A DNA stretch of 64,000 nt from Guillardia theta CCMP2712 (GCF_000315625.1 NW_005434654.1:697881-761880), one strand, 5' to 3'; shown: positions 5,030-49,991, counted from the stretch's first letter. The notes: generated from the letters alone by a model not told the origin. Numbers and translations are program-made.

Positions 5030-6720
5030 TCTGCTTGAGGCACTTTCTACCTCAGTGTGCGAGTCACCGGCTGCACTGCCGCCAGCCCACGCAGATCCTC
5101 TAAGCTTCCTGCAGCGGCGCTCCACCGACGGTACTCTGCATCCTGACACCCTCCCCTTCATCAGGCTTGTACAGTGGCAGACATCATCGCTCAGCGGCGC
5201 CGTCGAGGCCCTCGAGGATGTGGGCTGTTTGGTTGGCACTTCCGCCGATTCCCCGGCGGAGCCCTGCCATGTTTGGTCGGCACTTCCGATTCCCCGGCGG
5301 CGGAGCCCTGCCATGTTTGGTCGGCACTTCCGATTCCCGGCGGCGGAGTCCTGCCATGATGTCGGATGCCAGACCTGCTGCTGAGCGGCTCCGAGGATCC
5401 TCGAGCGGCCACTGAGGACACCTCCTCCGACTCCGGAGTCCCGGAGTCGCCGGAGGTCTCGGACTCAGCGCCGGCCGCAGTCCTTGTAGGCACTTTTTAC
5501 CTTATGCGAGTAAAACTCTACTTTCTTGTCGGCGGCTGCCCTTTCTCCGTCATGAGGTCGTTCACGTCCCCTCAGTGCTGTGCCGGTATCCCGGCGCTCG
5601 TTGCTTGCCCCTCTCTGCTTGTCTACGTGGCTTCCAGCAGTGCTGGTTACTTTCGGTCTTGTGTACTGTTTCGTGTATTTGCCCCGCGTTTGTTGCTGCA
5701 GTGTTGAGTTAACTGAAAAAAGGTCTGATGTTTTGCTTGTTGCTGCTTTCTTCTGCTTGAGGCACTTTTTACCTTATGCTCAGAGTGCCTATATTGGTAG
5801 GAGGGCCCGGCGTAAGATTTACGGTTGCCAGCAGTGCTGGTTCTTTTCGGGCTTGTGTTTTGTGTGTGTTTGTGCAGCTTCTCGCTGTGCGCTGTGTGCA
5901 AGCAGGTTTAGCTTGTTCCTGCTTTGTTTTGCTTGAGGCACATTTTACATTCTGCCAGTAAATCCCCGTTCTGCTTGAGGCACTTTTTACCTTTTATGCG
6001 AGTAAAACTCTATCAAAACAAGCAAAAGAAAGCAGCTGCATGCACACAGCGCCACAGCGAGAAGCTGCACAAACACACACAACCAAACAAGAACAACTTT
6101 TTACCTTCTGCGAGTAAAACTCTGAGACGGCCCAAGAGTAACCAGCACTGCTGGTAGCTTACGGTGTGTGTCACAGTTTATGCAGCTTCTCGCTGTGCGC
6201 TGTGTGCATGCAGGTTTAGCTTGTTCCTGCTTTGTTTTGCTTGAGGCACTTTTTACTTTTTATGCGAGTAAACACGTGACTTCGTTACCCGGTAGCTCTG
6301 CCAACCTGCTTTTGTTGCTGTGTGCAAAAAACAAGACCAAAAGCAGACCGTTTACTGGCAGGGGGGCGTCCGAGATGAAACTCCCTTAGACGCGATACTA
6401 GGTGCCCCGGAGGCATCCGACTGACCACTGTCAGTCGAGACGTCCCCCGCCGCCGCAAAGCTGGCGGCATTACGGAATCACGGTCGCGGACGAAGAAAGA
6501 GCAGCCGCCGACGGCGGGAGGGGGGGGGGGGCTGTGTGCATCGAAGCATGCAGGTTTAGCTTGTTCCTGCAACTTAGCAGGTTTAGCGTGTTCCTGTACC
6601 TTCTGCCAGTAAATCCGTCCATGCTTTCTTTTGCTTTAGAGGGAGTCCGATTTACTGGCAGAAGGTAAAAAGTGCCTCAAGCAAATTGCTGGTTCTTTTC
6701 GGGCTTGTGTTTTGTGAATG
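5030..6720. mobile_element. Cluster of degenerate 3'-end/3'UTR fragments of the CRE-like retrotransposon, in both orientations
   Basis: The terminal module tgcttgaggcactttttaccttctgccagtaaatcc, or its variant ...ttatgcgagtaaaactcta, recurs at ~5031, 5487, 5752, 5929, 5969, 6097, 6237, 6597 and 6649(-). A degenerate RLE C-terminus (STDGTLHPDTL) lies at ~5120-5200. Confidence 0.85.
5226..5360 (+). repeat. Three tandem ~43-bp units (tgtttggtcggcacttccgattccccggcggcggagccctgcca)
   Basis: Direct tandem repetition visible in the sequence. Confidence 0.85.
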
Positions 6721-6933: not shown

Positions 6934-9020
6934 CCGCCACCAGCAGCACCCGCAGCAGCAGCAGCCGCAGCTGCAGCACCCGCGTCAGCAGCAGCAGCAA
7001 CAGCAGCAGCAGCAACCACCACAGCAGCGACCACAACCGCGCGGGCCGAGGGAGCAGCGGCAGTCCGGCCAATCGTCTCAGGAGTCTGAGCCTGCTCCTC
7101 CGCCGCGACCTACGCTGTCCCTCACCTCTGCGAGCGAGCGCCAAAGACAGTTGGCGATTCATCAGTTCACTGCGGGTGACCTTCATCGGGCGGTACGGAC
7201 ACTACTGAGCTCCGGCATCTACAGGGCTGAACCTTTCGCTGATCTTCTTGCTGAAGCACAAGAGAAGTTCCCTGATGGTGCGTCGCCTGCCTTTGGAAGT
7301 GCTTCCGCGGATCATCTCACCCAGCAAGCGCTTGCAGTACTGCAGGCGGATTTGACTGACATCCTCGACACCACTAGCCTGATCCAGGCGATCAAGCGCT
7401 ACAGCTCCTTTGCGGGGACCGATCATCGGACCAAGGGTGGAGGATTTGGCAACACCTGTCACCCCTTTCTAGTCATCCTGCAGCTTTGAAGCTCTACTGG
7501 GTGGGCTGGATGGCATTGTAGCTGAAGAAGAGCCTTAAGCGCCGTCTCAAGACTCAACTTCTTCACTTCGAGGTCGTCACTGGCGGGATTACACTTGGCG
7601 GCCTGCCTATCGGCACGGATGGATTTCATGCTAGTCAGCTCCGAGCGAAGGTTTCTACCCTCAACGAAGAGCTCTCGAAGCTCGGGCTCGTCCAGCATGG
7701 CTTCATGTTCAAGACGCTGGTGAGGGCGAGCCATCTCCAGAAGCTGCGCTTCTTCCTCCAGGGGTCTTCTCCGTTTCTCCCGCGGGTCCAATCACAGATT
7801 CGTCGCTTTGACCTCTCTGTCCACCTGGCGCTTGAGAAATACCACCGCTGGCCTTCCTCGCAGTACCTTGCCGCGCATCCCGACCTGCTAGAGTTTGCGA
7901 GGTTCAAGCGGGAGCTTCCGCATAGTCGAGGAGGGGACGAGTTCACGCCCTCTGAGGGTCTACACCCCGCTGTTTACTATACGGCTATCGCTCGCTTCCT
8001 CGCTTCAGGCTTGGTACTCTGACCAGCCCATGTCACGGACCCTGCCCTCTCCTCATAGCCTGGACGTTCACTGCTCGAGATCTCTCCGTGCCCAGAAGCA
8101 TCCTCTGGCGACCTTCTTCGGCTTCGCGCTTGGGCTGGCGCTGCCGCGTCTGGGTGCCAGCAGTGCTGGTTCTTTTCGGGCTTGTGTTTTGTGTGTGATT
8201 GTGCAGCTTCTCGCTGTGGACTGTGTATCTGCCGGTTCAGCTTGTTCCTGCTTTGTTTTGCTTGAGGCACTTTTTATCTTCTGCCAGTAAATCCTATACC
8301 CCCTTCTTCGTTGAGGCGCACGACTTCGTTCATAATGCTGGAGCGATCCTCTACCGTCGTGTCAAGGCTCCTGCACCGGCTGCAGATGGCGCGGCGATCC
8401 CACCTGCCCCGGCTGCTGTGCCTGATGACGCAGGACGCCCCCCGGCATCTGTGGTACACATCCCTGGTTTGCGCGCTCTCGTCGACTCGTCTCATGAGCA
8501 CTTCATTCCTCCCCCTGCGCAGCGAAATGTGACTCCTCTTGTCATGCGCGTCTTCCCTCGCCATGTGCATGCTCGCGCTGCGCTGACCGATCAGCAGCGT
8601 GATATCCTCACCTTGCACAGCCGCAGGACACACTCGCTCAAGTCGCAGGATAGGGTCTTGCAGTCTACCATCTTCGCTCATTTTCCTGAGCGAGACCTGA
8701 GCCACTCTCCGATGCGAGTCTCGAGCTACTACCCCCTCAAGGCCTTCCCGCACCGCTATGCTCAGATGCTCGACTGCTATCTCCATGGCATGCCGATCTG
8801 CCAGTGTCCGACGAAATGTGATGGATGTCAGCGCGAGCTCGACCCCTCCGTTGCTGCACATCATCTCCAGACCTGCAAACGCCGATCCTCCAAGCTTCCC
8901 ACGGCGCATGACAACCTTACTCGTACGATTCGGTCGATGCTGAACGAAGCTGGTCTTCAGAGCGTCATCGATACAATGGGGGATCCTCGTTCTCGACGGC
9001 AGGTACCCTCCCATCCTCAT
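6934..9020 (+). pseudogene. CRE-like non-LTR retrotransposon ORF fragment: Q-rich N-terminal region, pre-RT region, RT7/thumb and CCHC knuckle; internally deleted and frameshifted
   Basis: Motifs: AGDLHRAVRTLLSSG...QEKFP (pre-RT); GITLGGLPIGTDGF (RT7, ~7575); LPHSRGG..HPAVYYTAI (thumb); CDGC..HHLQTCK..AHDNL (CCHC and RHD-like motif). Interrupted at 8121-8301 and truncated at 9020. Confidence 0.85.
8121..8301 (+). mobile_element. 181-bp 5'-truncated 3'UTR copy inserted into another copy of the same element, with a 9-bp TSD
   Basis: ccttcttcg lies at both 8112-8120 and 8302-8310. The empty site gcgaccttcttcgttgaggc is present in the copies at ~13075 and ~20555. Confidence 0.9.
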
Positions 9021-9022
9021 AT

Positions 9023-9715
9023 CATATAGGATTTACTGGCAGAAGATAAAAAGTGCCTCAAGCAAAACAAAGCAGGAACAAGCTGAACCGGCAGGCACAC
9101 AGTCCACAGCGAGAAGCTGCACAAACACACACAAAACACAAGCCCGAAAAGAACCAGCACTGCCACCCAGACGCGGCATCGCCAGCCCAAGCGCGAAGCC
9201 GCGCAGACAAGCAGCCTAAGGGTCAAGCAATCAAGCAACAAGCAGCAGGAGCATGCAGGAGGAATAAAATCCCTTAGACGCGATACCCGGAGGCAGCCGA
9301 CTGACCACTGTCAGTCGAGACGTCCGCTGCCGCCACAAAGCGGGCGGCCGCGGACGGAGAAAGGGCAGCCGCCGACAAGGAGCCGGCGCTGCCCGGGTGT
9401 CCGCCTGGGGCAGCGGACGGAGGGAGGCTGGACACAGGAACACGGTACCGCTCGAGGTAGTCCTCCTCGCTAGCCTCCGAGTCAGCGGTAGCCGAGTCAG
9501 TGGTAGCCGCCCGTGACGGCGGCGACGCCGCGGCAATGCCCAAGGACCGGCGTGACCCGACCGATGCCGGGGAGGAAGCAGGCGAGCTCGGACCAGCAGC
9601 AAGCACCCCAGTGGTGTCGAGCTCTCCGGAGGCACCCGACGTCACAGTGAGGGACGGAGACGCCTCGCCAGCTCCGCGCCGATCGTCGGGGCCACTCGAA
9701 GGGTTTCCCCCATCA
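9023..9715 (-). mobile_element. 5'-truncated copy of the retroelement 3' end: C-terminal ORF tail plus complete ~250-nt 3'UTR
   Basis: Encodes ...SGQSAASGYRV* (stop 9274-9276), followed by a UTR ending ccagtaaatcctata. Inverted relative to 11290-11755. Confidence 0.9.
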
Positions 9716-12080: not shown

Positions 12081-12311
12081 ACGTAGAGGAGGCCTTCCTA
12101 GCTGAGCCGTCTTGCTAAGGTCCTCTCATGTCTGGATGCTTGGGTTTCACATCAGTAGTAGCATACAGTCTATCTCTCATGTGCTCCTCAATTCTGGTTT
12201 TGTGTGCATTAAACTTGGTCTTGAGCAAAAACTGTCTTGTTACAACTAAGGTCGATGTGATGTCTGCGTGACTTTGGACTAGTACAAGTCTAACAAACTT
12301 GTATTCCGTCA

Positions 12312-13132
12312 CCCTTAGACGCGATACCCGGAGCGGCAGCCGAGAGGGATGAACGCTCGAGGAGGAGTAGTCATAGCATATGCAGCGCGATGTTTGCGAA
12401 TCTTGGCAGACGCTGCAACATGGCTCGGAGGGCGGCGTCGAGGTTGACCTCCCCCCACTTGGTCAGGTCGCCGCCGGCAGAGGCTACCAATGTAAGGGTG
12501 GACCAACGGTCACGTCCGCCATCAAGCCCTCGTACTGCTCGGACCCTCGATCGCGGATTCCAGGGATGTGGATATCGCCCTTCATCTTGCGGCCATGAGG
12601 ATGGGAGGGTACCTGCCGTCGAGAACGAGGATCCCCCACTGTATCGATGACGCTCTGAAGACCAGCTTCGTTCAGCATCGACCGAATCGTACGAGTAAGG
12701 TTGTCATGCGCCGTGGGAACTTCGGAAGCTTGGAGGATCGGCGTTTGCAGGTCTGGAGATGATGTGCAGCAACGGAGGGATCGAGCTCGCGCTGACATCC
12801 ATCACATTCCGTCGGACACTGGCAGATCGGCATGCCACTGATGGAGATAGCAGTCGAGCATCTGAGCATAGCGGTGCGGGAAGGCCTTGAGGGGGTAGTA
12901 GCTCGAGACTCGCATCGGAGAGTGGCTCAGGTCCGATCACGCTCAGGAAAATGAGCGAAGATGGTCAGCCTGTGAGACTGCAAGACCCTATCCTGCGACT
13001 TGAGCGAGTGTGTCCTGCGGCTACACGACGGTAGAGGATCGCTCCAGCATTATGAACGAAGTCGTGCGCCTCAACGAAGAAGGTCGCCAGAGGATGCTTC
13101 TGGGCACGGAGAGATCTCGAGCAGTGAACGTC
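12312..13132 (-). pseudogene. Retroelement fragment (thumb, CCHC, RLE) with deletions and many micro-insertions
   Basis: Homologous to 8055-9020 and 10790-10960. Contains KGDIHIPG..LMADVT (PD-(D/E)xK-like RLE core). Confidence 0.9.
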
Positions 13133-14184
13133 GGCCATAGCGTTGCCGTTCCGTATCCTTGTCGGATCAGTTAACCAGGGTGGTTCTCATAGTAGTTTTA
13201 GTCAAATTCAAGCGGCAAGAGAAAATTGAGCTAAAAATGTTGGCTCCGTCAATTTATGTACCTTTTTCGTTGCCAGGGCTGCCGGGCCATCCAAGACGAG
13301 AAGGGCAATGTTGAGCAAAACCTTCCTCTATTTGATATGAATAGGCGTGTATAGTTGACTAAATAATCATGAGGAGGCTCGGGGTAGGTATTCAAATGAT
13401 TTGAATCTTTCCAACGGCCTCCAGCCCGTGTTGAGGGGTAGGGGGTAGTGCAAACTTCTCGTATCAATCTAAAACACTTGTAAACGACCTCACACTTGCC
13501 CCGTCTCTTCCCTATCCCACTACTCCCAATGTACTCAGGGACTGTTTGCTCAGCTGCTGAGCGCAGTCAAGGACCATGGCCCCTCAATGCTAACTCCTGA
13601 AACTGCCAGGCAAGTACTGAGATCAAACAGCTCAATTCTTGGCTGAGAATCACACCTATAGTAGGTTGAATGTGTAAGGTATGCATCTCATCGAAATTTG
13701 CACTTGCGTACCAAAGCACTCATCAGCTATAGGTGATGGTTGTTCACTTCCAGAAGAAGGGAAACATGAAGGGAACCGATCAGAGAAGCAACCTTCGAAG
13801 ACATGAAGGAAATTCGATTCTCCTTGTTGTGTTGACGCCCTAGCTTCCTTTACCTGAAGGCTTCGTCGGTTGAATAAGAAACATATTTCAAGAGACTTCC
13901 TGTTGCTTTGCCATGATTGCGTTTTTTGAGGCTTCTCCCAACCTATTGTAATATGGCGGTGTCATTTGTGAGGAGGTGAGGAGTTTGAGAGGCTGGGGGA
14001 AGGAGAGGGGAGGGGTTGGAAGGGAAATGGACGCCTGGGAGGCCAGGCTAGTTGATATGCCTGATCGCTGCGAGAGGAGATGCCGGAGGAGAGACCGTGT
14101 TTACTCAAGACCACTAGCGAGGAAGGCAGGAGGGCGAGGAGGACATGAGAGGAGAGGAAGGAGAAAGCTACGGGTAGAGACGGT

Positions 14185-15110
14185 TTACTTGACAGCACTA
14201 ATGAGGAAGGGATGCTTCAGAGCCTCCAGTGCTGTAATCCTCGTGCGGGGATCGATGTTGAGGCAGCAGTTGAGGAAGTCCCAGATCGCATGTTTCTCAT
14301 CCACCTCCAGCCAGTCCTTGCATCCCGCATGCGCGCCCAGGGAGCTTGACAAGGTCCGCCATGTTTGCTTGAAACCGCGGGCATAGCTGAGATGCAGTTC
14401 CAATGGTGGAATCTGAATGACATCAAGTTAGCAACCTCAGGCCTCCCGCCACCATATCACCCTCATCCTCATCCTCTTGATACAACAACGCCGACGACAA
14501 CAATTTTACCTTAACGTCGAGGAGCTTCCACACAGCATCCATGCTCTTGATGTACATGCGCAAGCTGCTCAGACAGTCAGACAAGCGCACTTCCAAGGTA
14601 CACAAAGAGCGTACCCGTAGATCTCCATCGTTGCCGTGACTATGTCGTTATACTGGAACCATTGGAACTGTGTCGTGCGGCACAGCAGGGTAAGCAGTAC
14701 TACCCCAGCAGCCCACACGTCCACTGCTGTGGTCTGGCACTGCATGCCCATGAGCACTTCGGGCGCTCGGTATCCCCGAGTTCCCGCGCGTTTGACTGGA
14801 CGTTCGAATTTGACCCCTGAGTTCCTCACTGTCACCGATGCGTTCGTCTTGCTGACGCCCAACATGATCCGCCTCTTCGCCATCTGCTGCGCCATCTCTA
14901 GCTTCTCCTGCTCCTTTTGATTCCGCGAGGAGCGAGAGCTGGCCGTAGAAACCTCACAGGGCAAGATGTTGCCGATGCTGCGGCCTGATGACTGCATTTG
15001 TTTCTCTGCCAGCCCAAAGTCCACAAGCAAGTACTTCTTATTCCTTCTGTCGTAGAGGAAGTTATTCAATTTCACGTCTCGATGCATAATAAATGTATAA
15101 TGTATAAGAC
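14185..15110 (-). CDS. CDC7: CDC7-like Ser/Thr kinase; only the C-lobe is visible, so possibly 5'-truncated
   Basis: IMHRDVKLNNFLY..KYLLVDFGLAE, an insert, then RAGTRGYRAPEVL..QTTAVDVWAAGV; the final exon reads DPRTRITALEALKHPF. No GxGxxG or VAIK found upstream. Confidence 0.7.
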
Positions 15111-15239
15111 AGTTCTTGCTCAAGACCGAGTTTAATGCACACTGTGACACGAAACCACTGAGAATTGAGGCAGCACTGCACATGAGAGACTCCCGACTGT
15201 ATGCTAGAATGATGGAACTTCGGAACTCAAGCATCATTG

Positions 15240-15770
15240 CAACGCCGCCGCTGTTCCGATGACACGGACCGGGTACGGCCCGGTACCGCCGGGCATTGCC
15301 GCCGCGTGGGGCCGCCGCCTGGCTCGGAACTTGACTCTCACCGTTCAACGGTTGTGACTCACCGGCTCGGCGGTACTAGCCTTGAAGCCTCAGAGGTCCC
15401 GGAGAGTCCGGCTCGCCCGGCCGGGCGGCGGTCGGACCGTACTACGGTACCTTGAGTTTTCAGCCTGTGTTCAATTAACTCAGCGGGGCTATCTGATCGG
15501 ACGGACTGGCCGCATGGCTGGCATGCTGATCCCGGCATTAATCAGCAGTGCCGACGGTGACCGTCTCACTGAGCCCGGGTCCGCCGGGCGGCGGCGGCCG
15601 GGCGGAGCCCGAGTCAGTCCGACAGCACTCTCAGCGGCTGAGGGCCGCGCCAGCCCGGCGCTCAGCTGACTCAGTGACTCGGCCTTGTCGGAACCGCCGC
15701 ACGGTGCCTGCTTGCCAGCGCCGGGGCCGGGCGGCCCCGGTACTACGGTAGCCTGAGTCACGGTGGCAGA
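15240..15770. other. GC-rich tract built of short palindromic words (ccgg, ggcc, actcag, cacggt, cggtac); similar tracts at ~4810-4990, 20745-20960, 45280-46080, 47885-48720 and 50060-50245
   Basis: Composition and word reuse are seen directly. The ORFs here are Pro/Gly/Arg/Ala low-complexity on both strands. Confidence 0.75.
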
Positions 15771-15892
15771 CACAACTTGAACAGTCGGAGGTCGGCATAA
15801 CTTAACATAAACTGATGGCATGCCAGGCTTCAGTCGGAACTTGGAACACTCAGTGCGCCCGAAATGATTCAGGGCCACAAAAAATACTAAGT

Positions 15893-17348
15893 TTCACTGT
15901 GGAACAACTTGAAAATTGAGGGGGTGTTCGGCCTGAAATCTTTGTGTGTCACTCAGCGGCCGGCGCAAGCAAGTCCAACCTACATGGAACAACTTGAAAA
16001 TTGAGGAGGTGTTCGGCCTGAAATCTTTGTGTGTCACGCTCCTCCAAGTTTCAAGTTGTTCCATATAGTTTGGAGCAAGTCCAACCTACATGGAACATTG
16101 AGGGGGTGTTCGGCCTGAAATCTTTGCCACCGGTGACGGTGTGTCACTGCCGCGCAAGCAAGTCCAACCTACTAGGCTACATGGAACAACTTGAAAATTG
16201 AGGGGGTGTAAGAACTCGCCGCCGATAAGTTCTTGGAGACGGCGACTGAGAAGTTCAGGGTATTGCGTCTCATCGGTAGACGAAGCTCAGCGACTCACTG
16301 ATGGAAGTGGGCTTTGACATAGGTCTGGAATTAAGGAACTTCGACGAGCCTGAGGGTCTGGCAGTGAAAAGGGGGTGAGGAGGACACAGTGACACGTGTC
16401 ACAGTGTCCAGGGCGCTGTGCATTGTACTAGGCTTGGTCACTGGAGTCACGGTTGCCGCGGTGCAAGGGACTGAAGGGGAAGTGACTGCTGTGAATAAAG
16501 GAAGTGTTGGTGGCCCAGTGGTGTTGTACTGCACAGCTGTGTATCGTTCAGAGGTGAATAAGGTTGGGGTAAGGATCTCAGGTGTACTGAGAGATAGTGT
16601 TTGCGGCCACGGTGGACATGATCTTGGGTTAAATAGAGTCTGGCCAGTAGTTAGGAGGTGGAGGTTGATTCGATCATCGCCGGGGGTGTTCGGCCTGAAA
16701 TCCGAAGTTTGTGTGTCACGCTCCCGGAGTCCAAATTTCAAGTTGTTCCATATAGTTTGGAGCAAGTCCAACCTACATGGAACAACTTGAAAATTGAGGG
16801 GGTGTTCGGCCTGAAATCATTGTGTGTCACGCTCCTGCGGCCTGAAATCATTGTGTGTCACGCTCCTCCAAGTTTCAAGTTGTTCCATATAGTTTGGAGC
16901 AAGTCCAACCTACATGGAACAACTTGAAAATTGAGGGGGTGTTCGGCCTGAAATCATTGTGTGTCACGCTCCTGCGGCCTGAAATCTTTGTGTGTCACGC
17001 TCCTCCAAGTTTCAAGTTGTTCCATATAGTTTGGAGCAAGTGTTCGGCCTGAAATCTTTGTGTGTCACGCTCCTCCAAGTTTCAAGTTGTTCCATATAGT
17101 TTGGAGCAAGTCCAACCTACATGGAACAACTTGAAAATTGAGGGGGTGTTCGGCCTGAAATCATTGTGTGTCACGCTCCTGCGGCCTGAAATCATTGTGT
17201 GTCACGCTCCTCCAAGTTTCAAGTTGTTCCATATAGTTTGGAGCAAGTCCAACCTACATGGAACAACTTGAAAATTGAGGAGGTGTTCGGCCTGAAATCA
17301 TTGTGTGTCACGCTCCTGCGGCCTGAAATCTTTGTGTGTCACGCTCCC
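15893..17348. repeat. Tandem satellite with a 137-bp unit (internal ~30-bp duplication) containing a 26-bp-stem hairpin
   Basis: tttcaagttgttccatatagtttgga-gcaag-tccaacctacatggaacaacttgaaa at 16736, 16873, 17080 and 17217 (137-bp spacing where intact), a half copy at 17010, and degenerate copies at 15893-16209. Confidence 0.93.
16210..16681 (-). mobile_element. 472-bp insertion into the satellite with an 8-bp target-site duplication; possibly a degenerate LINE fragment
   Basis: gggggtgt at 16202-16209 and 16682-16689, with the satellite unit resuming exactly. The RT resemblance (NYWP..QTLF..KIMSTVAAN) is weak. Confidence 0.6.
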
Positions 17349-18119
17349 ATCGCAAGTCAGCTTTGATGGCCATTATGGCCTTCACAGGCGTGGCTGGCCC
17401 TCCGAAGCTCAATCATGATGCATCGCCAATACGATATCAAATATCAAAATAAAAAATATCAATGTTGAAAGTTTCCCGCCACTGTGAACTCTGCGAAGCC
17501 GTACAGATATGAGGATGTGCAGCGTTTGACAGAGCAAGACAAGTCAGGTGAGCATTATCTCTTTTTTTCATCGAAATTATCACGGGAAGAGATCCAAATG
17601 ACGTGTTCTTGATGCAGGTTGGAATGATTTGCAGCCTTTGGCAACTTGTATGAGATTGATGAACGGGTGAAGACTTTGGCAAGTGCCCAACCAATATTAC
17701 AAACCGGTATCCAGGAGTACGTAGACGTACCAGTAAGCCGCCCAGCATACAAAACTCTCGAGACAATGGCTGCATACGAAGGGGTTTTCGACACATCGCA
17801 GAACTGTCCCGATGTGAAAAGGTTGTGACATGAAATGGGCACAAACAAAGATAAGTTCAGGACTCGGGAGTCGATCAGGTCTAGGCAAAATATTGACATG
17901 GTCATCTCACTGCATGGAAGAACATGCAAAACTGAAGGAAAAGCTCAACGGAAAGTTCTAAATGAACAGATACAGCGCATTTTAGCAGTCACGGTCGGAG
18001 CAGCTCGATGCTTGAAACAAAGATGATCCTCAGTACAATCGAATGATGACAAGTAAGTCCCGTGGTTCGTGAAGGATTCTTCATCCAATTCTTAAGGATG
18101 TGTTGGAACGATGAAACAT

Positions 18120-19267
18120 TTTGCAAATCACCAATTTCATCACACTGACTGATGCATCATGTAAATATTACTGGTGTGAACTTGCATCAGATTCTGTTCA
18201 TCGGATGAGCCGCTACCAAGCAGTTGATGTCACAGCAAACAAGAGAGCCGTTTTGAAGATGTTGATATTCCTGACCGTAGAGCATTCAAGATGTGGCCAC
18301 ATGTCACATGCTTCTTGGTTAACGCAGATACACCCTCGCCAGGCAAAAGATGGAACGTCTTCAGGATTACAGGGAGGTCGGTTGTGCTTGTACCCTGATT
18401 GTAACTCTTCTAATAAAGATATGATAACCTGAATGTGCAATTCTGTTTGTTGATTCACAGTGTTTGCGACTCGATTGCAATCATCGAGTGCTTGCTCTGT
18501 TGAACAAGGCACTCCTCTGTAGAGCCATGCGACAAGAACACTACAGTTGCACGGTAGCATTGCGACACCAAGACAGGATTGATCCGATGAACGTCTCATT
18601 TATTGATACGCAAAGGCATCATCTGCACATTGCTTCATTTCTGACTAGGTTTCTGTGCAATCGAAATCCTTGTGAAAATATCATGACAGAGGAAAAATTT
18701 GAAGCGAAACGGAAAAATCATCGAAATATGATCATAGATATAGTGATTCATGATCAACAACGGTTCTCTACAGTCATCTATGCGGGCAGGAACAGTCATC
18801 TTCTGTGCAAACGTCTCTTCATGTATCGTTGAACGGTTGAGTGCATGTAAGACTTGCCTCCATAGAAAATTGAAGTGCATGAATCCTGACTGTAAGACTA
18901 GAAGAATTGAAAGCAAGTGATGACATGAGAACACATATCTAGACAGAAAAGTCGCTCAAGGTACAGCTGGATACAAATTTCTCACAAATCACAGTCATGC
19001 ATTTGAGCGCAACGTGCAACCTACGGCAATTTGAATAAAGGGTCAATCAGAGTTGATTCTGTTCAATGGTGTATCGATTATCAATTCCTTACCTGATCAT
19101 AAAAATTTCATCTTGTCTTCGAAGAATATTTGCAAGTACACCCGCGGATTGTTTGAACCTAGGGTGCATATTCCATTGCAGGATGGATGATTCAAACCTT
19201 GGCCCAACCTGTAGAGTTGAGAAAGAAGCTCGATCATCTCTTACAGGTATGATATGAGATCTTCATC
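18120..19267 (-). mobile_element. Degenerate intron-bearing dispersed repeat, possibly a Cys-rich DNA-transposon relic
   Basis: 18599-19266 aligns by eye, inverted, with 49301-49991. It has stops and frameshifts. Cys-rich motifs (CTEDDCSCPH; PCNCSVLVAW; EACDMWPHL) only loosely resemble KDZ/CxC-type transposases. Confidence 0.45.
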
Positions 19268-19972
19268 TCATTTCTATCTCAGTTGGGTTGGATTCGAAGT
19301 CTCTCAATATCAAAGTTCATCCTGGTGAGTCACGAAGGCACCATTTCATCCCTTCTTGCTCGTCCAGGGAGAGGGGGCTTGGGGAATGAGAAATGGGTGT
19401 TACCCCCACCCCCTATTGTAGAGTTTCAAACTCGTTCAAAGGTGGGTAGTTGAGGGTGCTCCATACCCACCCCACCACCCAAAATGACTCAAACGGAGGG
19501 GTTCTCGGATCCGAAGGAGTCCCGCCTCCATCACCCCCTCTCATTTGAATTCAAGATGGTTCAGGCCGACCCCACATACAGGCTTGCAGTTTTCTTATGT
19601 ATGCCCATATGATTTGATCGGACAGGCCCCAGGTTCAAGGGATGAAGCAATTGAATTCACCAGCATGCTTGAAGATTTTTCATGGGAGTGGGGTTATACT
19701 TGTACCGGATGTGTACAATACATAGGGGAGAACCCCGAATGGTACCAAAAGAGTACCAAAGTCACATGGTTCGGACTGTACTAACTGGTACCAAGAAATT
19801 GTACTCAAGAAGACCCTACCCCTGAAAAAGTTCTGCTTGGCTCTTCGTGATTTGAATTCGGAACACGGTCGGAAGACCCACCCCGCCCCCACATGAGGCG
19901 TGGTATGCGTGGATTTGAATCTACCACCCTCACCGCGAAACGTTTTAGAGCTCCAAGGTCAATTGAGAAAGG

Positions 19973-20734
19973 CAACGGTCACGTCCGCCATCAAGCCCTC
20001 GTACTGCTCGGACCCTCGATCGCGGATTCCAGGGATGTGGATATCGCCCTTCATCTTGCGGCCATGAGGATGGGAGGGTACCTGCCGTCGAGAACGAGGA
20101 TCCCCCACTGTATCGATGACGCTCTGAAGACCAGCTTCGTTCAGCATCGACCGAATCGTACGAGTAAGGTTGTCATGCGCCGTGGGAACTTCGGAAGCTT
20201 GGAGGATCGGCGTTGGCAGGTCTGGAGATGATGTGCAGCAACGGAGGGATCGAGCTCGCGCTGACATCCATCACATTCCGTCGGACACTGGCAGATCGGC
20301 ATGCCACTGATGGAGATAGCAGTCGAGCATCTGAGCATAGCGGTGCGGGAAGGCCTTGAGGGGGTAGTAGCTCGAGACTCGCATCGGAGAGTGGCTCAGG
20401 AGTCCGATCACCGTGGCACGCTCAGGAAAATGAGCGAAGATGGTCAGCCTGTGAGACTGCAAGACCCTATCCTGCGACTTGAGCGAGTGTGTCCTGCGGC
20501 TACACGACGGTAGAGGATCGCTCCAGCATTATGAACGAAGTCGTGCGCCTCAACGAAGAAGGTCGCCAGAGGATGCTTCTGGGCACGGAGAGATCTCGAG
20601 CAGTGAACGTCCAGGCTATGAGGAGGGGGCAGGGTCCGTGACATGGGCTGGTCAGAGTACCAAGCCTGAAGCGAGGAAGCGAGCGATAGCCGTATAGTAA
20701 ACAGCGGGGTGTAGACCCTCAGAGGGCGTGAACT
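19973..20734 (-). pseudogene. Third retroelement fragment (thumb-CCHC-RLE start), nearly identical to 12504-13132
   Basis: Shares the same deletion and micro-insertions as the 12.5-kb copy, plus extra insertions at ~20400-20420. Confidence 0.9.
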
Positions 20735-21772: not shown

Positions 21773-22504
21773 ATGGTTGGTGCTGATGCAGAACCTTGCT
21801 CACATTTGGTCGAGTTGCAAGAATTCATGGCTTCAGATGCTGCACGCCAAGAACGATTGGTTGCTGTCATCGCTGTTATGCTGCAAGAAACAGTGAATGC
21901 AACTCAAAGTCTGTGTCGCCCCACAAAGCTCTCTTCGTTTGATGGGCCCAAGCCTCATTTGTCTGCGAGTTCTTACGTCAAAAGAATCATGAAATACAGT
22001 GACGCCAGCCCATGTTGCCTTGTGGTTGGCGCCATCTACCTTGAACGCTTGAAGAAACGAGACGACATGGTGGCTCTCACTGTCTACAACTTTCAAAGGT
22101 TGTTCCTTGTTGCCGTCATGCTCGCGTCGAAGTTTCTCGACGACGCCTACGCTTCCAACAGGATCTGGGCTGAGATCGGCGGTCTCATGGTGGAAGAGCT
22201 CAATCACCTCGAGCTTGAGTTTCTCTATAGGATCGCCTTCTCGCTTTCCATCAGCCGTGAGGAGTACGACTGGTACGCCGAAGAGCTTCATCGAAGAGCA
22301 GACTTGCAGGAGCGCGAATGTCCTGAGAACCCAGCAAGCGCCACACGCGAGGAGCTCAACTCCAGCCTAGACCATGATCTTGATGTTGTCACCCGACAGT
22401 TTGCTGAGCTTGAGTCGCAACTTTCAAGAAACAGCACACCGACGTCTAAGGCGTGTTGGATTGCTGGGCAGGAGAGCGAGAAAGTCTCGCTCGCATCTTA
22501 TTAG
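21773..22504 (+). CDS. PHO80/CYCU (P-type) cyclin
   Basis: SYVKRIMKYSDASPCCLVVGAIYLERL..NFQRLFLVAVMLASKFLDDAYASNRIWAEIGGLMVEELNHLELEFL is a PHO80-like cyclin box. Confidence 0.92.
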   Translation: MVGADAEPCSHLVELQEFMASDAARQERLVAVIAVMLQETVNATQSLCRPTKLSSFDGPKPHLSASSYVKRIMKYSDASPCCLVVGAIYLERLKKRDDMVALTVYNFQRLFLVAVMLASKFLDDAYASNRIWAEIGGLMVEELNHLELEFLYRIAFSLSISREEYDWYAEELHRRADLQERECPENPASATREELNSSLDHDLDVVTRQFAELESQLSRNSTPTSKACWIAGQESEKVSLASY

Positions 22505-22521
22505 TTCAACGCATGTAAATG

Positions 22522-25443
22522 TTAAGGTAAAGACTCTAACGAAGCGCCCGCGCCTTCCCTCCAACTCCTTCCCCCCTCACAAGGCAACAGAGCTCGCACG
22601 AACTCGGGCGAGCATGCGATGCTATCCACCGCAGCTGTTGCTTGTAAGCTTTGAGCAAGGTACATCGCCTCGCCAATGGCTTGAAAGCGCGGCTGTTGCT
22701 TTCCCATTGTTCCTGCCACACAAGACCCAACGGCTATGCCAATGCGACAGGAGATGCGCTGGCCGGCCTTGCGGCTCTCGACGTCGACGACGGAGAGCAT
22801 GGTTTCAGCAAGAGCCATCATCATGTGGCAGACCAGCCGTTCTTGCGACTCCTCAAGCCAACCAGCGCAGATGTACTCGTCACCAATAGTGTCGAGCTTG
22901 AAAATGCGTCGCTCAGGAACAGCTTCGTCGAGCTTCGAGTAGATTTGATGGATCAGCGTCGCCACTTGCAGGGGCTCCAGCCTCGCTGCTATACTCGTGT
23001 AGTCGCAGAGGTCCAGTCTGAGGACAACGGCCTTCCTGTAGGTTGACGAGACTTCGCCAGTGTCTGCCGCCTCTCTGATCACATCCCGTGGGAACAAGTC
23101 ATTCAAGACGCGGTAGACAGCACGGTACTCCATCTTATGCCGCTGAAGGGAGCACCACTGCCTCCTCTGCGTCGATTGGCTCTCCTTGAGGATCCTATGG
23201 CTGAAGTAGGCGACGGCAAAGAGAATAAGGAAGATGCCCTTGTTGGCTTGAGGCCAGAGCAAGAGAGTAATCACAAGCTGGACGGGGAAGGTGAAGAGGA
23301 GGAAGCGGCGATGCCAGGCTACAGGCATGTCGGTCTGTTGCAAATTGATCCACGAGAACATAGGGCCAAAGATAACGAACAAGCCCGTCGCTCGCGTCCA
23401 ACGCACGCACAGTAGCATGACAACGTGGTGAAGGGCATGGGCTGCTAGGTAGGAAAGCTGCCACTTGCTCAAGGAGGTGACAGCCTGCTGAATGCCCTGC
23501 ACTCGAGCCCGCCCCATTCGTAGAGCAAGCAAGGCAAAGCGTCCTCCATACAGGCAGAGAGCGATGAAGACAGCGCATATGATTGTCTGCGCCATCCGCA
23601 CTTGAGTTTGGAGCTCATGTGCCACGGGAGATGCAATAGAAAAGAAGGTGAGCTGCGTCGTGTTGTAAAATACAACGAAGGTCATCACCATGTACGAGAG
23701 GCTCCCGAAGAACAATCGCTGTGTGGAGATGATGTACCTGCTCATCTGAAACTTGCACTCAACGTCTCTCTCTGCAAAAACAACATTGGACGAGCAGATG
23801 TCATACTTGGAGGACACCGTGGAAAAGCGATGCTCGCCGTCCAGCCAGGCCATGATTGGGTCGATTTTTACGCTCGCCTTAGGAGACTGCAAGAGCTTGA
23901 CGTACGGCTGGGAGAATCGCCGCATGCTTAAAGATTGCGCACCGATCTCTCTGGCGTTGCTCTGAGCTCGTTGGCAAGTGCTGGGAATGAGGAGGAAAGT
24001 TTTCATCATTCCTTTCCCTTTGACGTGAATTTCCTCTCTTTCAACCACGTTCACATCGCTGGACCTGCTGACTGTGAGCATGCTGTGAAACTCTGAGGTG
24101 CAAAGGATGCTGCCGGGCTGTGAGTGTGAGCACATGCGGGCACTGGTGTTGACCGCATCCCCAAACAAGCAGTAAAAACGCCTTGTCTTCCCCACGATAG
24201 CTCCAGCTAGAGGTCCACACGCAATACCCACCTTTGCCCACAAGGCCTCGCCTTCAAGACTCTTGCACTTGCTGGCCTCGGCGATAAGAGCCTTGGCGAT
24301 AAGAACGGCTTCCCTCACGCATCGCTCTTTGTATTGCTCGAGATGCTCTGGGACGTGGAAAGGATGAGAAGTGCGGGGGCAGCAGATGACGTAGGTGTCG
24401 TTGATGTGATGGTACTTGAAGAAGCCGAAGCCGTCAACGATGCTGTCGAAGGCCGTGTAAATCTCGTCGATGAGCTTGAACGTCTCCAGGGCACGGGAGC
24501 TGGCGAAGGCTGTGGCAGACGGGGAGAGACTAACGAACAAGACGATGCAGAACTCCATCTTGGCAGCGATCAACGTGTCTGTCTCCTGTCCCTTCAGTCG
24601 CTGGTGTAAGGACTTGGGGATGAGGGTTGCGAGGAGGTCGGAGGTCTTGCAGGTGAGGGTCTCTACGTCTCTCTCCCTCGCGTGCTCCCTCCTCGCTGCC
24701 TCGCGCTTGTAGCCGCACACAAACACACTCGAGATGGTAAGCGTAAGATGAAGAACGACCGCAGACAGCCACGAGCGCAGACCGACGCCGGTCACCAAGC
24801 CTGCAGCTGCCAGGCACAGCACCTGTGTCAGAGCGATGACGAGGCACGTCCGTCCGCTCACTCCCGCAGCATACGGGAAGAGATAGCCCAGCACTGCGTA
24901 GACTGTGAATGTCTCTGGGGTCGTTAACTTGGAAATGCAGCCTGCATCTTCGCAGCTGTACTCCGTGCAGAAATTCTGCATGGTGGAAAGAGGATCTGAA
25001 TCAACGCAGTGCCAGTGCCAGGGGATGCCATGGCGGTAATCGATGGTCATGTTGACATGGGGGGACATGTAATTCAAACTCCTCGACCGGCGAATGTCCG
25101 CGATAACTCGTCTAACGACCTCAAGCTCGAAGAGGATGGTGATGAGAGTGAAGAAAAATATCTCCTTGTTGATAAGCCTGGAGAGCCTGCGGTATGGCGC
25201 TAGAAGATGGTAGATCCCTCCTCCTAAGATGCTGATGACTGACGAGCTTAAGAACAAGAGCCCATGCAGACACCTCCACTGCACGTCCCCCCCACACAGG
25301 TCTCCGATCAGGATCCTCGTGCCATAGATAAGAAACAAGACGCTCATGGACATCAGCAGTTTTTTCATCGTGCTGCGGTGAGCCATGAAGTATTGTACAT
25401 CAAAGTCTTGAGTTTGAGCTGAGTGATCGACCTCTTCCGGCAT
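22522..25443 (-). CDS. Membrane class III adenylyl/guanylyl cyclase, TM-cyclase-TM-cyclase, 973 aa
   Basis: Two hydrophobic blocks. C1: GIACGPLAGAIVG..FYCLFGDAVNTSARM..VKGKGMMKTF. C2: VLRLDLCDYT..FKLDTIGDEY..RIGIAVG. Confidence 0.92.
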   Translation of the reverse strand: MPEEVDHSAQTQDFDVQYFMAHRSTMKKLLMSMSVLFLIYGTRILIGDLCGGDVQWRCLHGLLFLSSSVISILGGGIYHLLAPYRRLSRLINKEIFFFTLITILFELEVVRRVIADIRRSRSLNYMSPHVNMTIDYRHGIPWHWHCVDSDPLSTMQNFCTEYSCEDAGCISKLTTPETFTVYAVLGYLFPYAAGVSGRTCLVIALTQVLCLAAAGLVTGVGLRSWLSAVVLHLTLTISSVFVCGYKREAARREHARERDVETLTCKTSDLLATLIPKSLHQRLKGQETDTLIAAKMEFCIVLFVSLSPSATAFASSRALETFKLIDEIYTAFDSIVDGFGFFKYHHINDTYVICCPRTSHPFHVPEHLEQYKERCVREAVLIAKALIAEASKCKSLEGEALWAKVGIACGPLAGAIVGKTRRFYCLFGDAVNTSARMCSHSQPGSILCTSEFHSMLTVSRSSDVNVVEREEIHVKGKGMMKTFLLIPSTCQRAQSNAREIGAQSLSMRRFSQPYVKLLQSPKASVKIDPIMAWLDGEHRFSTVSSKYDICSSNVVFAERDVECKFQMSRYIISTQRLFFGSLSYMVMTFVVFYNTTQLTFFSIASPVAHELQTQVRMAQTIICAVFIALCLYGGRFALLALRMGRARVQGIQQAVTSLSKWQLSYLAAHALHHVVMLLCVRWTRATGLFVIFGPMFSWINLQQTDMPVAWHRRFLLFTFPVQLVITLLLWPQANKGIFLILFAVAYFSHRILKESQSTQRRQWCSLQRHKMEYRAVYRVLNDLFPRDVIREAADTGEVSSTYRKAVVLRLDLCDYTSIAARLEPLQVATLIHQIYSKLDEAVPERRIFKLDTIGDEYICAGWLEESQERLVCHMMMALAETMLSVVDVESRKAGQRISCRIGIAVGSCVAGTMGKQQPRFQAIGEAMYLAQSLQATAAVDSIACSPEFVRALLPCEGGRSWREGAGASLESLP

Positions 25444-45140: not shown

Positions 45141-46076
45141 CAGTGTCAGGGTCAAGCCTCCTCGACTCTCCTGATTGTCCTCGTACTGATTTTTAACTTA
45201 ACTTTGAGTAAAGAAGCTGAGCGTTATGCTTTTATTATCGCTTCTGTAACCGGTCTGGTCCGGTCCGATCACACTCAGTGACTGTCCGATCCGAGGAGCA
45301 ATTGCGGGGCCCTCCGAGGCTCCGATGATGGGCCGGCGGCATGCCACCGGCACTGAGTCGGCCAATCCGAGACCGCGCCGGCCCAGCCTGTGAGTGAGCC
45401 CTGCCGCAGTCACGGCCGGGCTGGCCGGGCCGCCGGGCCGGGGCCGGCCGCGCCCCACCGGCGACCGTGGCGCCGCGCCGGCCCGGCCCATGGCCGCACC
45501 CGGTCACGGTCCTGCGGGGGCGGCCCGGGCCGCGGCTCGGACTCGCGGCCTCGGAACTCAGTGAACGTGGCCTCACACCGGCGTCCTGGATCATCATCGG
45601 AATGAGTCAGCCGGGCTCAGCGGCCGCCGGGCAGCCCGCACGGCGGCACGCCTGAGGCTCACCGTGAGTCAAGTGGCTGCCGGCCGGCCCCGGCGGGCGG
45701 GGGCAGACCCGGTTCAACGGTTCTCGGATCATGAGATCAGGATGGGACGTAACTGAGCCTCAGGGCCGGCGGCCGCCTCAAGTTGCCAGTTAAAGCCTCC
45801 GGCCGTCACGGTGCACTGAGTTACTTGTAGTTTACCACCGAAGTTGAAAAACTTTGAAGAAAAGAATAAGAAAAATGCTATCATCATGCCAGCATAGTCG
45901 GACAGGCGGCCCAGGCCGCCGCCGCCAGGCTGATGATCACTGATTAGTCATCGTGGGGCAGTGAGTAACTTTGCAGTCACCACGGTGACCGTCGTCCGAC
46001 CTTACCGTACGGTAAACTGCACGCCGGCGTCCGGTGCCATAATGCCCGGGCCCGCACCGCCCGAGTGTCGTAAGTC

Positions 46077-47124
46077 TCAGGACTCCGATCGATCCAACAC
46101 AATGATGGCTTGGAAAAGATCGTAAAGATTCGCTGTCAGCGCCAGATGAGATGGTAAAATCGTTAGCCCCTCCAGCTCGAAAAACTTCAGTGGTGTGCTC
46201 AGCGAGTATGCCTGCACGAGCTTCCAGGTCTTGCTGTCGTACTCGTACATGTTGCATCCTTGCTCATCCGCATAGCTTGCAGACAGCAAGAGGTTCCCGC
46301 TTCCCGCCGTGTCGAACTCTCCTCCTTGTGCTCCTCGAATTGTGTTGGTTTTGATAGGAGGGAGAGGCTCTAGGGTCGGCCACCGGTACCGCTTGATCTC
46401 CCGAGCGACCGGAGACTCCGAGGAGTAGAGCACGTCCTCCTTCACTGCTGCCCATGGCAGGTGGCGTTGCGAAGGCACCCTCTGCGACCTAACCGCCGAG
46501 AGGTTCTTGGGGTCGTACTCGACTATGATCGGCCTCACCCATGCCTTGTCTTCGACGGGCGCGATGATCTTGCCATTGTACATGCTGATGTCGCCGAGGT
46601 GATCGTAGTCGTTGGCGACGAGCTCCTGTCGTGCGTCACAGGGTCAGTCTCTCTCGCATGCACAGGCTGGACGCGGCAGCAGACAGGGCTGACCTGAGGG
46701 ATGGCGCTGGGGTTGTTCCGCACAGTCGTTGCGAACCTGTCGATCCTGATCTTGCGAATGCTGTTTCGTCCGGAGAAGTACAGGTACTTGGCATCCGAGG
46801 CGACGCCTTGTGCAGTCTTCCAGTTGAAGAACCAGGGAAGCACCATGCGCTTCAGGCGCACTTCCGGCAGGCTTGCGTTGACGCTTGTGCTCCCGCAAGG
46901 GCGCACGTTGATGGTAGCGAACTGAACCGCAAAGTAGAGGCTGGCTGAGACCATAAGCGCTAGTCCGATGCATAAGATCCTGAGGGCAGAGACCCTCCGC
47001 ACGGGATGGGAGGCAGGCTTGTGGGGATGCAGCTCACCCCTCTCGAGGTCCGCGTCGCTAGCCAGAGACTCATCGAGGGAGTCGGCGAAGGATGAGAGGA
47101 GGGGATGCGTGAATCTAGAATCCA
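46077..47124 (-). CDS. Type II membrane protein with a putative beta-propeller-like luminal domain, copy 1
   Basis: Two exons; TM ILCIGLALMVSASLYFAV; AQGVASD..YLYFS; YDHLGDISMYNGKIIAPVE. Inverted duplicate of 51488-52554. Confidence 0.75.
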
Positions 47125-49245: not shown

Positions 49246-49300
49246 CAGCCGCGGCCGGTACGGTACTAGCCGCTGAGCATCTCATCACCATCTCATTACT

Positions 49301-49991
49301 ATGAAGATCTCATATCAGACATGTAAGAGATGATCGAGCTTCTTTTCCAATTCTCAAGGCGAGGCAAAGGTTTGAATCATCCATCGAGAAATGGAATAGG
49401 TGGCCTTGGTTCAAACAATCTGTGTTTGTACTTGTAAATATGCTTCGAAGGCGAGATTCAATTTTCATGATCATGTAAGGAACTCGGAACTAATCATGGA
49501 TACACCATTGAAGAGAATCAACTCTGATGGAACTTTCATTCAAAATGCCGTAGGTTGCATGTTGGCTCAAATGCATGATTTGTGAGAAATTTGTCACATG
49601 ATTCAGCTGTACCTTGGGCAACTTTTTGGTTTCATGTCATCACTCACTTTCAATGCTTACAGTCTTTCAACAAGGAGTCATGCACTTCACCTTTCTATTG
49701 AGGCAATGCTTCCATCCACTCAACCGTTGAAAGATGCGTGAAGAAACGTTTGTATGAAATAATGTCTTTCCTGCCCGCATAGATGATATATAGTATGATT
49801 GTTGCTCAATGACTCACTATATCATGATCAAGTGCATTGACAATTGCATGTCCATGTTTCATGATCGAGGATGATATTTCAATGATCCAAGTTTTCCTCC
49901 TTCGTCATATCATTTCCGCAACGCTTTCGATTGCACAGAAACCCGGTGTCAGTCACAAAAGGATGTGCAGATGCTTTTGCGTATCAATAAA
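49301..49991 (+). mobile_element. Second, diverged copy of the 18.6-19.3 kb dispersed repeat
   Basis: Colinear blocks such as gtaagagatgatcgagcttct, gccgtaggttgca, cctgcccgcatagatga and tttcgattgcacagaaacc. Confidence 0.8.

Follow-up and report, generated by a model that had tools for sequence, protein, structure and literature searches.

Within a 64,000-nt stretch of the Guillardia theta CCMP2712 genome (the window), three copies of one repeat, here called A, B and C, raise the question of what process has frameshifted two of them many times over by short insertions at the cost of few substitutions. A first-pass annotation attributed the pattern to an insertional decay of repeats, brought about by break repair with the hallmarks of polymerase theta or by a targeted defence analogous in effect to fungal RIP. 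Our analysis points elsewhere: most of the short insertions are probably excision footprints of a family of cut-and-paste DNA transposons with 5'-C...G-3' ends and a 3-bp target-site duplication.

The three copies were compared by alignment and self-BLAST, taking A as its reverse complement. As initially described, B and C differ from A by four common insertions and 3-4 substitutions over ~400 aligned bases, and several further short insertions are private to B or to C (Table 1). Copy B is a statistical outlier, accumulating 10 insertions, no deletions and three substitutions over 638 nt; two single-letter insertions belong to this copy. Copy A departs from the consensus by five substitutions and no indels, and has nested 3' ends of its own element, truncated at the 5' side, on its left and right (8121-8301 and 9025-9201). 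The further insertions reported inside an older one in C were recovered as GA and CCGTGGCA, both at the third common site, and those reported at 12420-12480 in B resolve into CTCGG, GGC and CCGCCG; the cases in the nearby satellite are likewise real. So is the insertion near position 8005, which lies in the left flank of A and recurs in C (20657-20673), indicating that A, B and C derive from one ancestor copy that was already frameshifted. The GC-richness ascribed to the insertions, on the other hand, is no special feature, since non-duplicated inserted letters are 59% GC and the surrounding sequence 61%.

The events in B and C are insertions, not deletions in A: they are absent from 117 copies and fragments of the repeat at 12 places in the genome, and contigs without each of them are present in four public runs. 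At several B sites, runs X15, X2 and X4 are represented in Logan by contigs of insertion-free forms only, as would be seen if the insertions were assembly or sequencing errors in repeats, but Logan contigs drop rare variants and the absence of the insertion forms is therefore uninformative. Read support is partial, in that clear coverage by insertion-carrying contigs is limited to the 8- and 4-letter insertions, in run X1. The same insertions nevertheless occur in B and C at two separate places of the assembly, and a precise grammar, which errors would not follow, is common to dozens of other loci. We accordingly consider error a highly implausible source.

Table 1. Positions of repeat copies, insertions and footprints (window coordinates, except where a locus elsewhere in the genome is named by an L number).
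Feature	Position	Strand	Description
7-letter insertion CTT-C-AG-G-CTT	8001-8017	+	Canonical form minus one letter
Copy A	8302-9020	+	Footprint-free piece of retroelement ORF; predicted zinc knuckle and start of endonuclease domain
Copy B	12343-13132	-	Same ORF region; internal deletion of 256 nt, ~10 short insertions
B-private insertion cluster	12424-12476		Comprises the next three rows
CTCGG	12424-12428		CTC-C-GAG plus trimmed right copy
GGC	12434-12436		3-letter tandem duplication; target duplication only
CCGCCG	12471-12476		Near-canonical for GCC
Insertion GGAACTTC	12716-12723	+ (of B)	Common to B and C
Canonical footprint GAA-C-TTC-G-GAA	12717-12727		In B; coding strand TTC + C + GAA + G + TTC
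Same footprint in C	20186-20196		
4-letter insertion ACTG	12838-12841	+ (of B)	Coding strand T/CAG/T, filler CAG
TCT to TCCGATCA, net +5	~12932-12939	+ (of B)	Not canonical; third common site
9-letter insertion CAGCCTGTG	12967-12975	+ (of B)	Coding strand CACAGGCTG, C and G bracketed; not canonical
Cluster of 12 canonical footprints	15139-16732		Between B and C
Footprint GAACTTCGGAA	15215		In the 15139-16732 cluster
Footprint CTACTAGGCTA	16169		Annotated earlier as insertion taggctac
Footprint TCCCGGAGTCC	16722		Annotated earlier as insertion cggag
Copy C	19973-20734	-	256-nt deletion and four insertions in common with B; two extra at one site
Canonical footprint CAC-C-GTG-G-CAC (11-mer CACCGTGGCAC)	20409-20419		C only; inside older insertion common with B
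Further clusters of canonical footprints	45273-45712, 48143-48612, 49268-50679		In GC-rich word tracts
Element with terminal inverted repeats	L010:11093-13066		1974 nt; starts with C, ends with G, flanked by TTC

The repeat itself corresponds to the 3' portion of a G. theta non-LTR retrotransposon of R2/CRE type. Its reverse transcriptase scores 30.0 bits against RVT_1 (cut-off 29.6) in L004:13680-15083 and 27.6-28.6 bits in other copies, and an alignment of the C-terminal part to 29 distant relatives retains C..C..HH..C, HD, GD, DVT and K...Y. The structural model of this part (pLDDT 88.6) finds R2 proteins in all of its top seven PDB matches (E-values 5e-6 to 2.5e-3) and other PD-(D/E)XK nucleases after them, and by fold the domain is predicted to combine a CCHC knuckle with a PD-(D/E)XK endonuclease of R2 type. 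The 3' end is fixed, with 96 fragments terminating in ...CAGTAAATCC(TAT), and 5' ends fall anywhere, the shortest detectable fragments being the commonest; a constant 3' end combined with 5' truncation of varying extent is what target-primed reverse transcription is expected to leave. Nested insertions of the element occupy 18 different consensus positions and favour older copies and head-to-tail arrays; their target duplications measure 0-8 nt, and the fillers at their junctions 0-14 nt.

The letters of the short insertions are not random. In the 8-letter class, a native triplet X is followed by C, the reverse complement of X (X'), G and X again, so that the derived site retains both 3-nt copies of a target duplication and, between them, an inverted copy of the triplet bracketed by the letters with which the L010 element begins and ends. 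Independent events conform to this rule with X = TTC (B/C, L003:8887 and window 15215), X = GTG (C, and L002:9598, where the same 8-letter insertion as in the 20409-20419 footprint sits at a GTG triplet), X = AGA (L011:5275) and X = GTC (L003:3833). In the 256 kb examined, the resulting 11-letter pattern, X-C-X'-G-X, is found 62 times against ~5 expected (2-6 in Markov-1 random sequence), a roughly tenfold enrichment specific to the C..G pair, the other 15 bracket pairs yielding 1-18; when X is of mixed letters and lies outside the retroelement, the C..G pair is seen 40 times and every other pair at most six. Some canonical 11-mers recur, among them GAACTTCGGAA and TGCCGCAGTGC, and may copy one event within an unrecognised repeat, in which case independent events would be fewer.

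Once duplicated letters are set aside, 31 of 113 cases open with C and close with G (8.4% expected; P = 3e-9), the commonest filler being CAG, with eight independent events. Flank duplication accompanies 45% of cases, where the null gives 5.6%, and six of the nine pure tandem duplications are 3 letters long. Of the 31 insertions of 3-14 letters in the ORF part of the element, 24 qualify as canonical, as C..G-bracketed or as tandem duplications of 3-4 letters, compared with 9 for shuffled letters. In the low-complexity tail of the element, 37 of 77 insertions belong to no class. All but one of the B and C insertions fall within the canonical, C..G-bracketed or short tandem duplication classes, and the three or four non-canonical changes in these copies (CACAGGCTG, TCT to TCCGATCA, single letters) can be accounted for only as scars that are trimmed or compound.

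An element of matching design is present in the genome. The 1974-nt element in L010 has inverted terminal repeats of 13 nt with no mismatch, or ~23 nt with three, and is flanked by a TTC target duplication. It occupies positions 1993-1995 of the retroelement consensus, and three states of this site can be read: empty in more than 30 copies (cgtgTTC/ctgtg), filled in L010 (cgtgTTC, the element from CATTCTGTAGGAT to ATCCTACAGAATG, then TTCctgtg) and scarred in L003 (cgtgTTC-C-GAA-G-TTCctgtg), the last at L003:8887 and identical to the TTC footprint of B and C. The series runs across paralogous copies and not alleles of one locus. Taken together, the fixed grammar, its C...G specificity and the empty, filled and scarred states lead us to interpret most micro-insertions as excision footprints. 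Since the 256 kb contain one clear intact element of this kind and no transposase gene was found in the window or the loci, both the superfamily of the transposon and the hairpin chemistry outlined next are what we infer from these scars.

Classical footprints, known since work on maize and Antirrhinum in the 1980s, keep the target duplication with inverted flank letters between its copies. Here, insertion would duplicate the triplet to give X-[C...G]-X, and excision would leave on each flank a hairpin whose tip retains one element end letter (left hairpin X-C-X', right hairpin X'-G-X), which host enzymes would open some letters from the tip. The resulting overhangs would be complementary over exactly the duplicated triplet, and for this reason we propose that they anneal and are ligated into X-C-X'-G-X, a net gain of eight letters. 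Trimming would yield the shorter forms: X-CAG-X, X-C-X' with a stub, or a bare X-X. Successive arrivals and departures at a local hot spot, spanning ~12.3-20.7 kb of the window, could explain why B and C carry many scars and most sister copies none, as well as the stepwise series at one site in C.

Error-prone end joining of ordinary, non-transposon double-strand breaks, by polymerase theta or otherwise, with templated snap-back copying of flanks throughout the genome, would account for the enriched flank duplication, for the inverted flank copy within some scars and for the high proportion of indels relative to substitutions in the family (489 substitutions alongside 192 insertions and 146 deletions). 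Random breaks do not explain, however, why the turn letters are always C and then G, why the inverted copy never deviates from 3 letters, or why an element with matching ends and duplication occupies a site that is scarred in another copy. Nor is there an excess of templating once the immediate duplication is set aside: within 60 nt the longest match averages 4.5 letters direct and 4.1 inverted, against 4.1 for each in shuffled insertions, and palindromes are newly created in 12-16% of cases, compared with 16% under the null. With neither commoner than in shuffled insertions, nothing points to polymerase theta in particular, and we judge end joining of this kind unlikely. Of the break-repair scars postulated at the outset, the flank duplication and the partly inverted flank copies stand, but what is duplicated at the flank is a 3-bp target site, and the invariant C and G represent the end letters of a transposon; the polymerase theta templating did not survive comparison with shuffled insertions.

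The retroelement offers another potential source, in that abortive, ultra-short target-primed reverse transcription could leave a target duplication and a few junction letters without any body of the element. Its copies are full of inserted pieces of the element that lack the 5' part, some as short as 16 nt and more numerous the shorter they are, the short duplications and fillers of its nested insertions would fit, and it is predicted to encode the R2-type endonuclease domain. Five or six insertions of 8-20 letters match pieces of the last 25 letters of the element, and this minority of 8-20-letter insertions consists of ultra-short 5'-truncated retroelement copies made by target-primed reverse transcription. 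As the origin of most micro-insertions, such a process nonetheless seems improbable: true junction fillers are TA/TC-rich whereas those of the micro-insertions are C...G-bracketed, micro-insertion sites show no significant coincidence with nested retroelement insertion sites, and the canonical pattern is commoner outside the element family, at 0.22 per kb (40 in 180 kb) against 0.12 per kb (9 in 76 kb) inside it. The same densities bear on a repeat-induced, RIP-analogous defence that would find and disable duplicated DNA by insertion. The multiple frameshifts and few substitutions of B and C would suit it, but 51 of the 117 retroelement copies have no insertion of at least 3 letters, A-like copies are clean, and a 98%-identical 1-kb pair in the window (46089-47104 and 51512-52530) differs by 16 substitutions and no insertion of at least 3 letters. 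Because the scar is denser outside the retroelement and these copies and this pair are spared, the proposed defence is not supported, and with a transposon grammar in the scars themselves we hold it to be extremely improbable. The clean 11-letter scar occurs throughout the sampled DNA, not just in repeats, which argues for ordinary transposon biology and against a new genome defence.

Excision footprints are also clustered. The segment at 15139-16732 is a landing and leaving hot spot over a GC-rich word tract and a 137-nt satellite. We tentatively raise the possibility, which we rate below even chances, that a single transposon family with a 3-bp duplication is so active in G. theta that its uniform 8-letter scar recurs about once per 4 kb sampled, that stacked scars in hot spots build the word tracts, and that the excision chemistry is distinct. 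If the scar density held genome-wide, there would be some twenty thousand scars, making excision a leading source of insertions in this genome. Were this so, stacked scars would form the GC-rich word tracts, excision would create new sequence tracts and an insertion-biased indel spectrum, and the uniformity of the scar would reflect a hairpin that retains one element letter and is joined by annealing over the triplet.

The retroelement resembles R2, CRE and NeSL elements in its domain order, with a CCHC knuckle and a domain that matches the PD-(D/E)XK-type endonuclease fold downstream of the reverse transcriptase. It also resembles them in its constant 3' end, in 5' truncation that can be extreme, in target duplications that are short and variable, and in extra letters at the 3' junction; unlike them, it does not appear to be tied to a single target gene but enters many sites, often head-to-tail inside its own older copies. 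Polymerase theta-mediated end joining also leaves short insertions at repaired breaks, some of them inverted flank copies, but the scars described here have fixed bracket letters and a fixed length of 3, with no general excess of nearby templates or of microhomology-driven deletions. The CACTA/Mirage/Chapaev (CMC) superfamily generates 2-4-bp duplications and has CAC...GTG ends. The G. theta transposon shares with it a 3-bp duplication without fixed target sequence, a first letter C and a last letter G, and the nearby GC-rich tracts of short repeated words resemble subterminal repeat arrays; the L010 element, however, ends in CATTC...GAATG and not CACTA...TAGTG, and the 256 kb examined yielded no CMC transposase. 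For hAT, Transib, RAG and MULE, the discussion in PMC5499845 gives hairpins in the flanking DNA, opened by host enzymes and joined with footprints, as the established excision route. The scars of hAT (Ac/Ds, Tam3, Hermes), Transib/RAG and MULE elements resemble those reported here in the retained target duplication with an inverted flank copy (P nucleotides) between, in their trimmed variants, in their clustering by local re-insertion and in the frameshifting of coding sequence. They differ in the length of the duplication, which is 8, 5 or 9 bp there and 3 bp here, in that one element end letter (C, G) is kept on each side in G. theta, and in the unusual uniformity of its product, X-C-X'-G-X, as if the opened hairpins annealed over the duplicated triplet.

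We analyzed the window together with eleven further Guillardia theta loci (L001-L011, ~190 kb, assembly GCA_000315625.1), 256 kb altogether. Three pieces of one retroelement ORF region lie in the window, and the short insertions that the first-pass annotation had described in two of them are confirmed: relative to the footprint-free copy A (8302-9020), copies B (12343-13132) and C (19973-20734) show 3-4 substitutions, a common 256-nt deletion and four common short insertions, to which C adds two private insertions, both at one site, and B another five, in a stretch absent from C. A 7-letter insertion is also common to the left flank of A and C, which indicates that A, B and C descend from one already broken copy. 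Piling up 117 copies (58.6 kb) against their consensus shows that family members normally lack the insertions and that B is an outlier. Unique events number 489 substitutions, 192 insertions and 146 deletions family-wide, and 188, 55 and 31, respectively, in the ORF part, with insertion lengths humped at 3-5 letters and deletion lengths falling steadily. Pairwise counts had suggested an insertion load independent of copy age, an effect that is largely gone once B and C are removed. For each insertion, the contigs of four public sequencing runs, which cannot establish the absence of a rare variant, hold the insertion-free form, and the 8- and 4-letter insertions are also covered by contigs of one run (X1).

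The window DNA is nuclear and comes from Guillardia theta CCMP2712, a cryptophyte; the 23 relatives of the copy A ORF are GUITHDRAFT proteins without exception. The repeat corresponds to the 3′ portion of an R2-type non-LTR retrotransposon. Upstream copies contain an RVT_1 reverse transcriptase, and the region spanned by A, B and C codes for a CCHC knuckle as well as a domain bearing the motifs HD, GD, DVT and K...Y. When 29 distant relatives are aligned to guide the folding, this endonuclease domain reaches a pLDDT of 88.6 (single-sequence folding of the region was unusable, at pLDDT 35), and R2 retrotransposon proteins take the first seven places among the PDB matches of the model, ahead of other PD-(D/E)XK nucleases. 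Searched as sequence against Pfam and the PDB sequences, the endonuclease region matched nothing, and an ESM Atlas feature search provided weak leads only. One distant relative of the domain, P0106 (1577 residues), has an N-terminal domain of the ubiquitin C-terminal hydrolase (UCH) type and gives no Pfam match to a reverse transcriptase.

Across the 256 kb, 96 fragments terminate at ...CAGTAAATCC(TAT), with 5′ ends at any position, and the commonest 3′-anchored fragments are the shortest detectable (16-39 nt). What had been considered a separate short repeat adjoining copy A is the 3′ end of the retroelement itself. At the 18 nested insertions, duplications measure 0-8 nt and the junctions contain 0-14 nt of filler. 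It looks as if older copies receive new ones at their 3′ end, and the data document an R2-type retroelement that inserts into copies of itself and is extremely truncated. Head-to-tail arrays are present at L007:11716-13851 and L005:9688-14122, comprising three 1066-nt units cut at one same point and two ~2.4 kb units. A second subfamily ends in ...CTTCTGCGAGTAAA and then ACTC, where the main form ends in ...CTGCCAGTAAATCC(TAT), and ORF deletions of exactly 33 nt arose independently at three different places.

The insertions follow a recognizable grammar. The flank is duplicated by 45% of them, against 5.6% with shuffled letters, and the inserted words CAG, CCACGGTG, CGAAGTTC and CAGGCT each appear more than once, at sites unrelated to one another. 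A single rule describes the 8-letter class: a native triplet X is followed by C, the reverse complement of X (X′), G and X again, with X being TTC in three insertions, GTG in two, and AGA and GTC in one each. The resulting 11-letter pattern X-C-X′-G-X, the canonical scar, occurs 62 times in 256 kb, compared with 2-6 times in random sequence and 1-18 times for the other 15 bracket pairs; the satellite insertions taggctac, reported in the first-pass annotation, and cggag are canonical scars as well. Scarred sites in the window include 12717, 15215 and 20409. Among 113 sets of non-duplicated inserted letters, 31 are bracketed by C at the start and G at the end (P = 3e-9), and pure tandem duplications involve 3 letters in most cases. 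Within the ORF part, footprint-like classes hold 24 of the 31 insertions of 3-14 letters (shuffled letters give 9), including every B/C insertion except one; three or four B/C changes lie outside the canonical grammar. Distinct from these, a minority of the insertions (5-6, each 8-20 letters long) derive from the 3′ terminus of the retroelement itself, and many insertions in its low-complexity tail fit no class.

These results bear on the process initially proposed, in which GC-rich, partly templated insertions, carrying a hallmark of polymerase theta-mediated end joining, were attributed to break repair or to a defence against repeats analogous to fungal RIP. The GC content of the inserted letters equals background, and templating holds for flank duplication, with no excess of direct or inverted matches within 60 nt. 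No single template for the recurrent words was found elsewhere in the 256 kb; the longest donor matches mostly lead back to the very copy that bears the insertion, and the 14-mer AGCTTCCGAAGTTC recurs at L008:5926, one of several loci with the same scar grammar. New palindromes with stems of at least 4 show no excess over chance among the insertions. Micro-insertions do not co-localise significantly with nested retroelement insertion sites in the ORF part (P = 0.17-0.53), and over a larger range one measure gives P = 0.03, maybe inflated by split alignments. An insertional defence is unsupported, canonical scars with mixed-letter X numbering 40 in 180 kb outside the retroelement (at most 6 there for every other bracket pair) against 9 in 76 kb inside it. 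Footprints of hAT-type 8-bp duplications, suggested by 8-nt duplications flanking nested pieces, were rejected: those pieces are 5′-truncated retroelement, and scar duplications measure 3 nt. The insertions stand as scars of break repair, with the Pol theta hallmark and the defence both unsupported, and the tempting but unsupported insertional counterpart of RIP gives way to an explanation that is testable and of a familiar type.

The composition of the scar is illustrated by consensus positions 1993-1995 of the retroelement. More than 30 copies are empty there (cgtgTTC followed directly by ctgtg), L010 is filled by a 1974-nt non-coding element between two TTC triplets, with inverted ends CATTCTGTAGGAT.../...ATCCTACAGAATG, and L003 is scarred (cgtgTTC-C-GAA-G-TTCctgtg). 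From this series, which compares paralogous copies and not alleles of one locus, it follows that the scar combines the target duplication with the two terminal letters of an L010-like element and an inverted triplet copy. The L010 element is the one intact element with the required ends found in the 256 kb, and it alone stands out when inverted terminal repeats flanked by 3-bp duplications are scanned for generically, a scan dominated by noise (204 matches vs 203 in the control). No transposase was found in the examined DNA, including the ORFs of 44.5-61 kb, and a literature search found nothing specific on Guillardia transposons. An undescribed DNA transposon family in cryptophytes is indicated. 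Two other insertions interrupt retroelement copies (L008:7469-9829 and L006:12007-14638); in one, the 12-nt inverted ends CATGCCGTTCAC match perfectly and a target duplication is not visible, and in the other the inverted ends are similar to CATTCCATGGCATTT and recall the L010 element, with 12 additional letters on one side.

Canonical scars cluster between B and C, and further ones lie in the tracts at 45-51 kb of the window, marking the B-C stretch as a landing-and-leaving hot spot. Cut-and-paste elements tend to re-insert locally. The hot spot fits such re-insertion and accounts for the stepwise series in C, and the odd GC-rich word tracts may have originated in this way. At 15115-15342, contigs of runs X1, X15 and X2 are shorter than the window by 9 letters; a canonical scar (15215-15225) lies inside, and the site may be footprint-polymorphic.

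Up to 56% of sampled words from 12200-15500 occur in freshwater, lake-water and runoff metagenome runs, the host genome being that of a marine cryptophyte. Metagenome contigs match the unique flank of this region with ~1% of letters different, and could represent a freshwater relative or library carry-over. The genes around the window repeats (cyclase, cyclin, kinase, ion-transport protein) are ordinary.

Features of the window and of the sampled loci
Feature	Location	Strand	Details
Second 3′-end subfamily	window 5483-5514, 6096-6118, 6181-6272; L010:6879-6972 and others		
33-nt deletions	L006:8440-8238, L011:4934-5323, L006:11538-11900		positions 179, 514, 554 of first pile-up consensus
Protein kinase gene	14569-15348	-	
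12 canonical scars between B and C	15139-16732		GC-rich word tract and 137-nt satellite
Cyclin gene	21773-22504	+	
Adenylate/guanylate cyclase gene	22522-25443	-	
Tandem array	52844-53505		period 23 nt, ~29 units, 95-97% alike
Tandem array	57616-57864		period 8 nt
Ion-transport protein gene	58196-60736	+	

The X-C-X′-G-X signature can be used to count past transposon excisions in the Guillardia theta genome, and helps annotators to spot 8-letter frameshifts in pseudogenes and repeats. We infer hairpin chemistry for its origin: excision would leave flank hairpins, each retaining one element letter at its tip, these would be opened a few letters from the tip, and the opened ends would anneal over the duplicated triplet and be joined, yielding X-C-X′-G-X. 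Excision of hAT, Transib, RAG and MULE elements proceeds through flank hairpins, host opening and end joining with footprints (PMC5499845), and the Guillardia scars would be a fresh example of this known kind of process.
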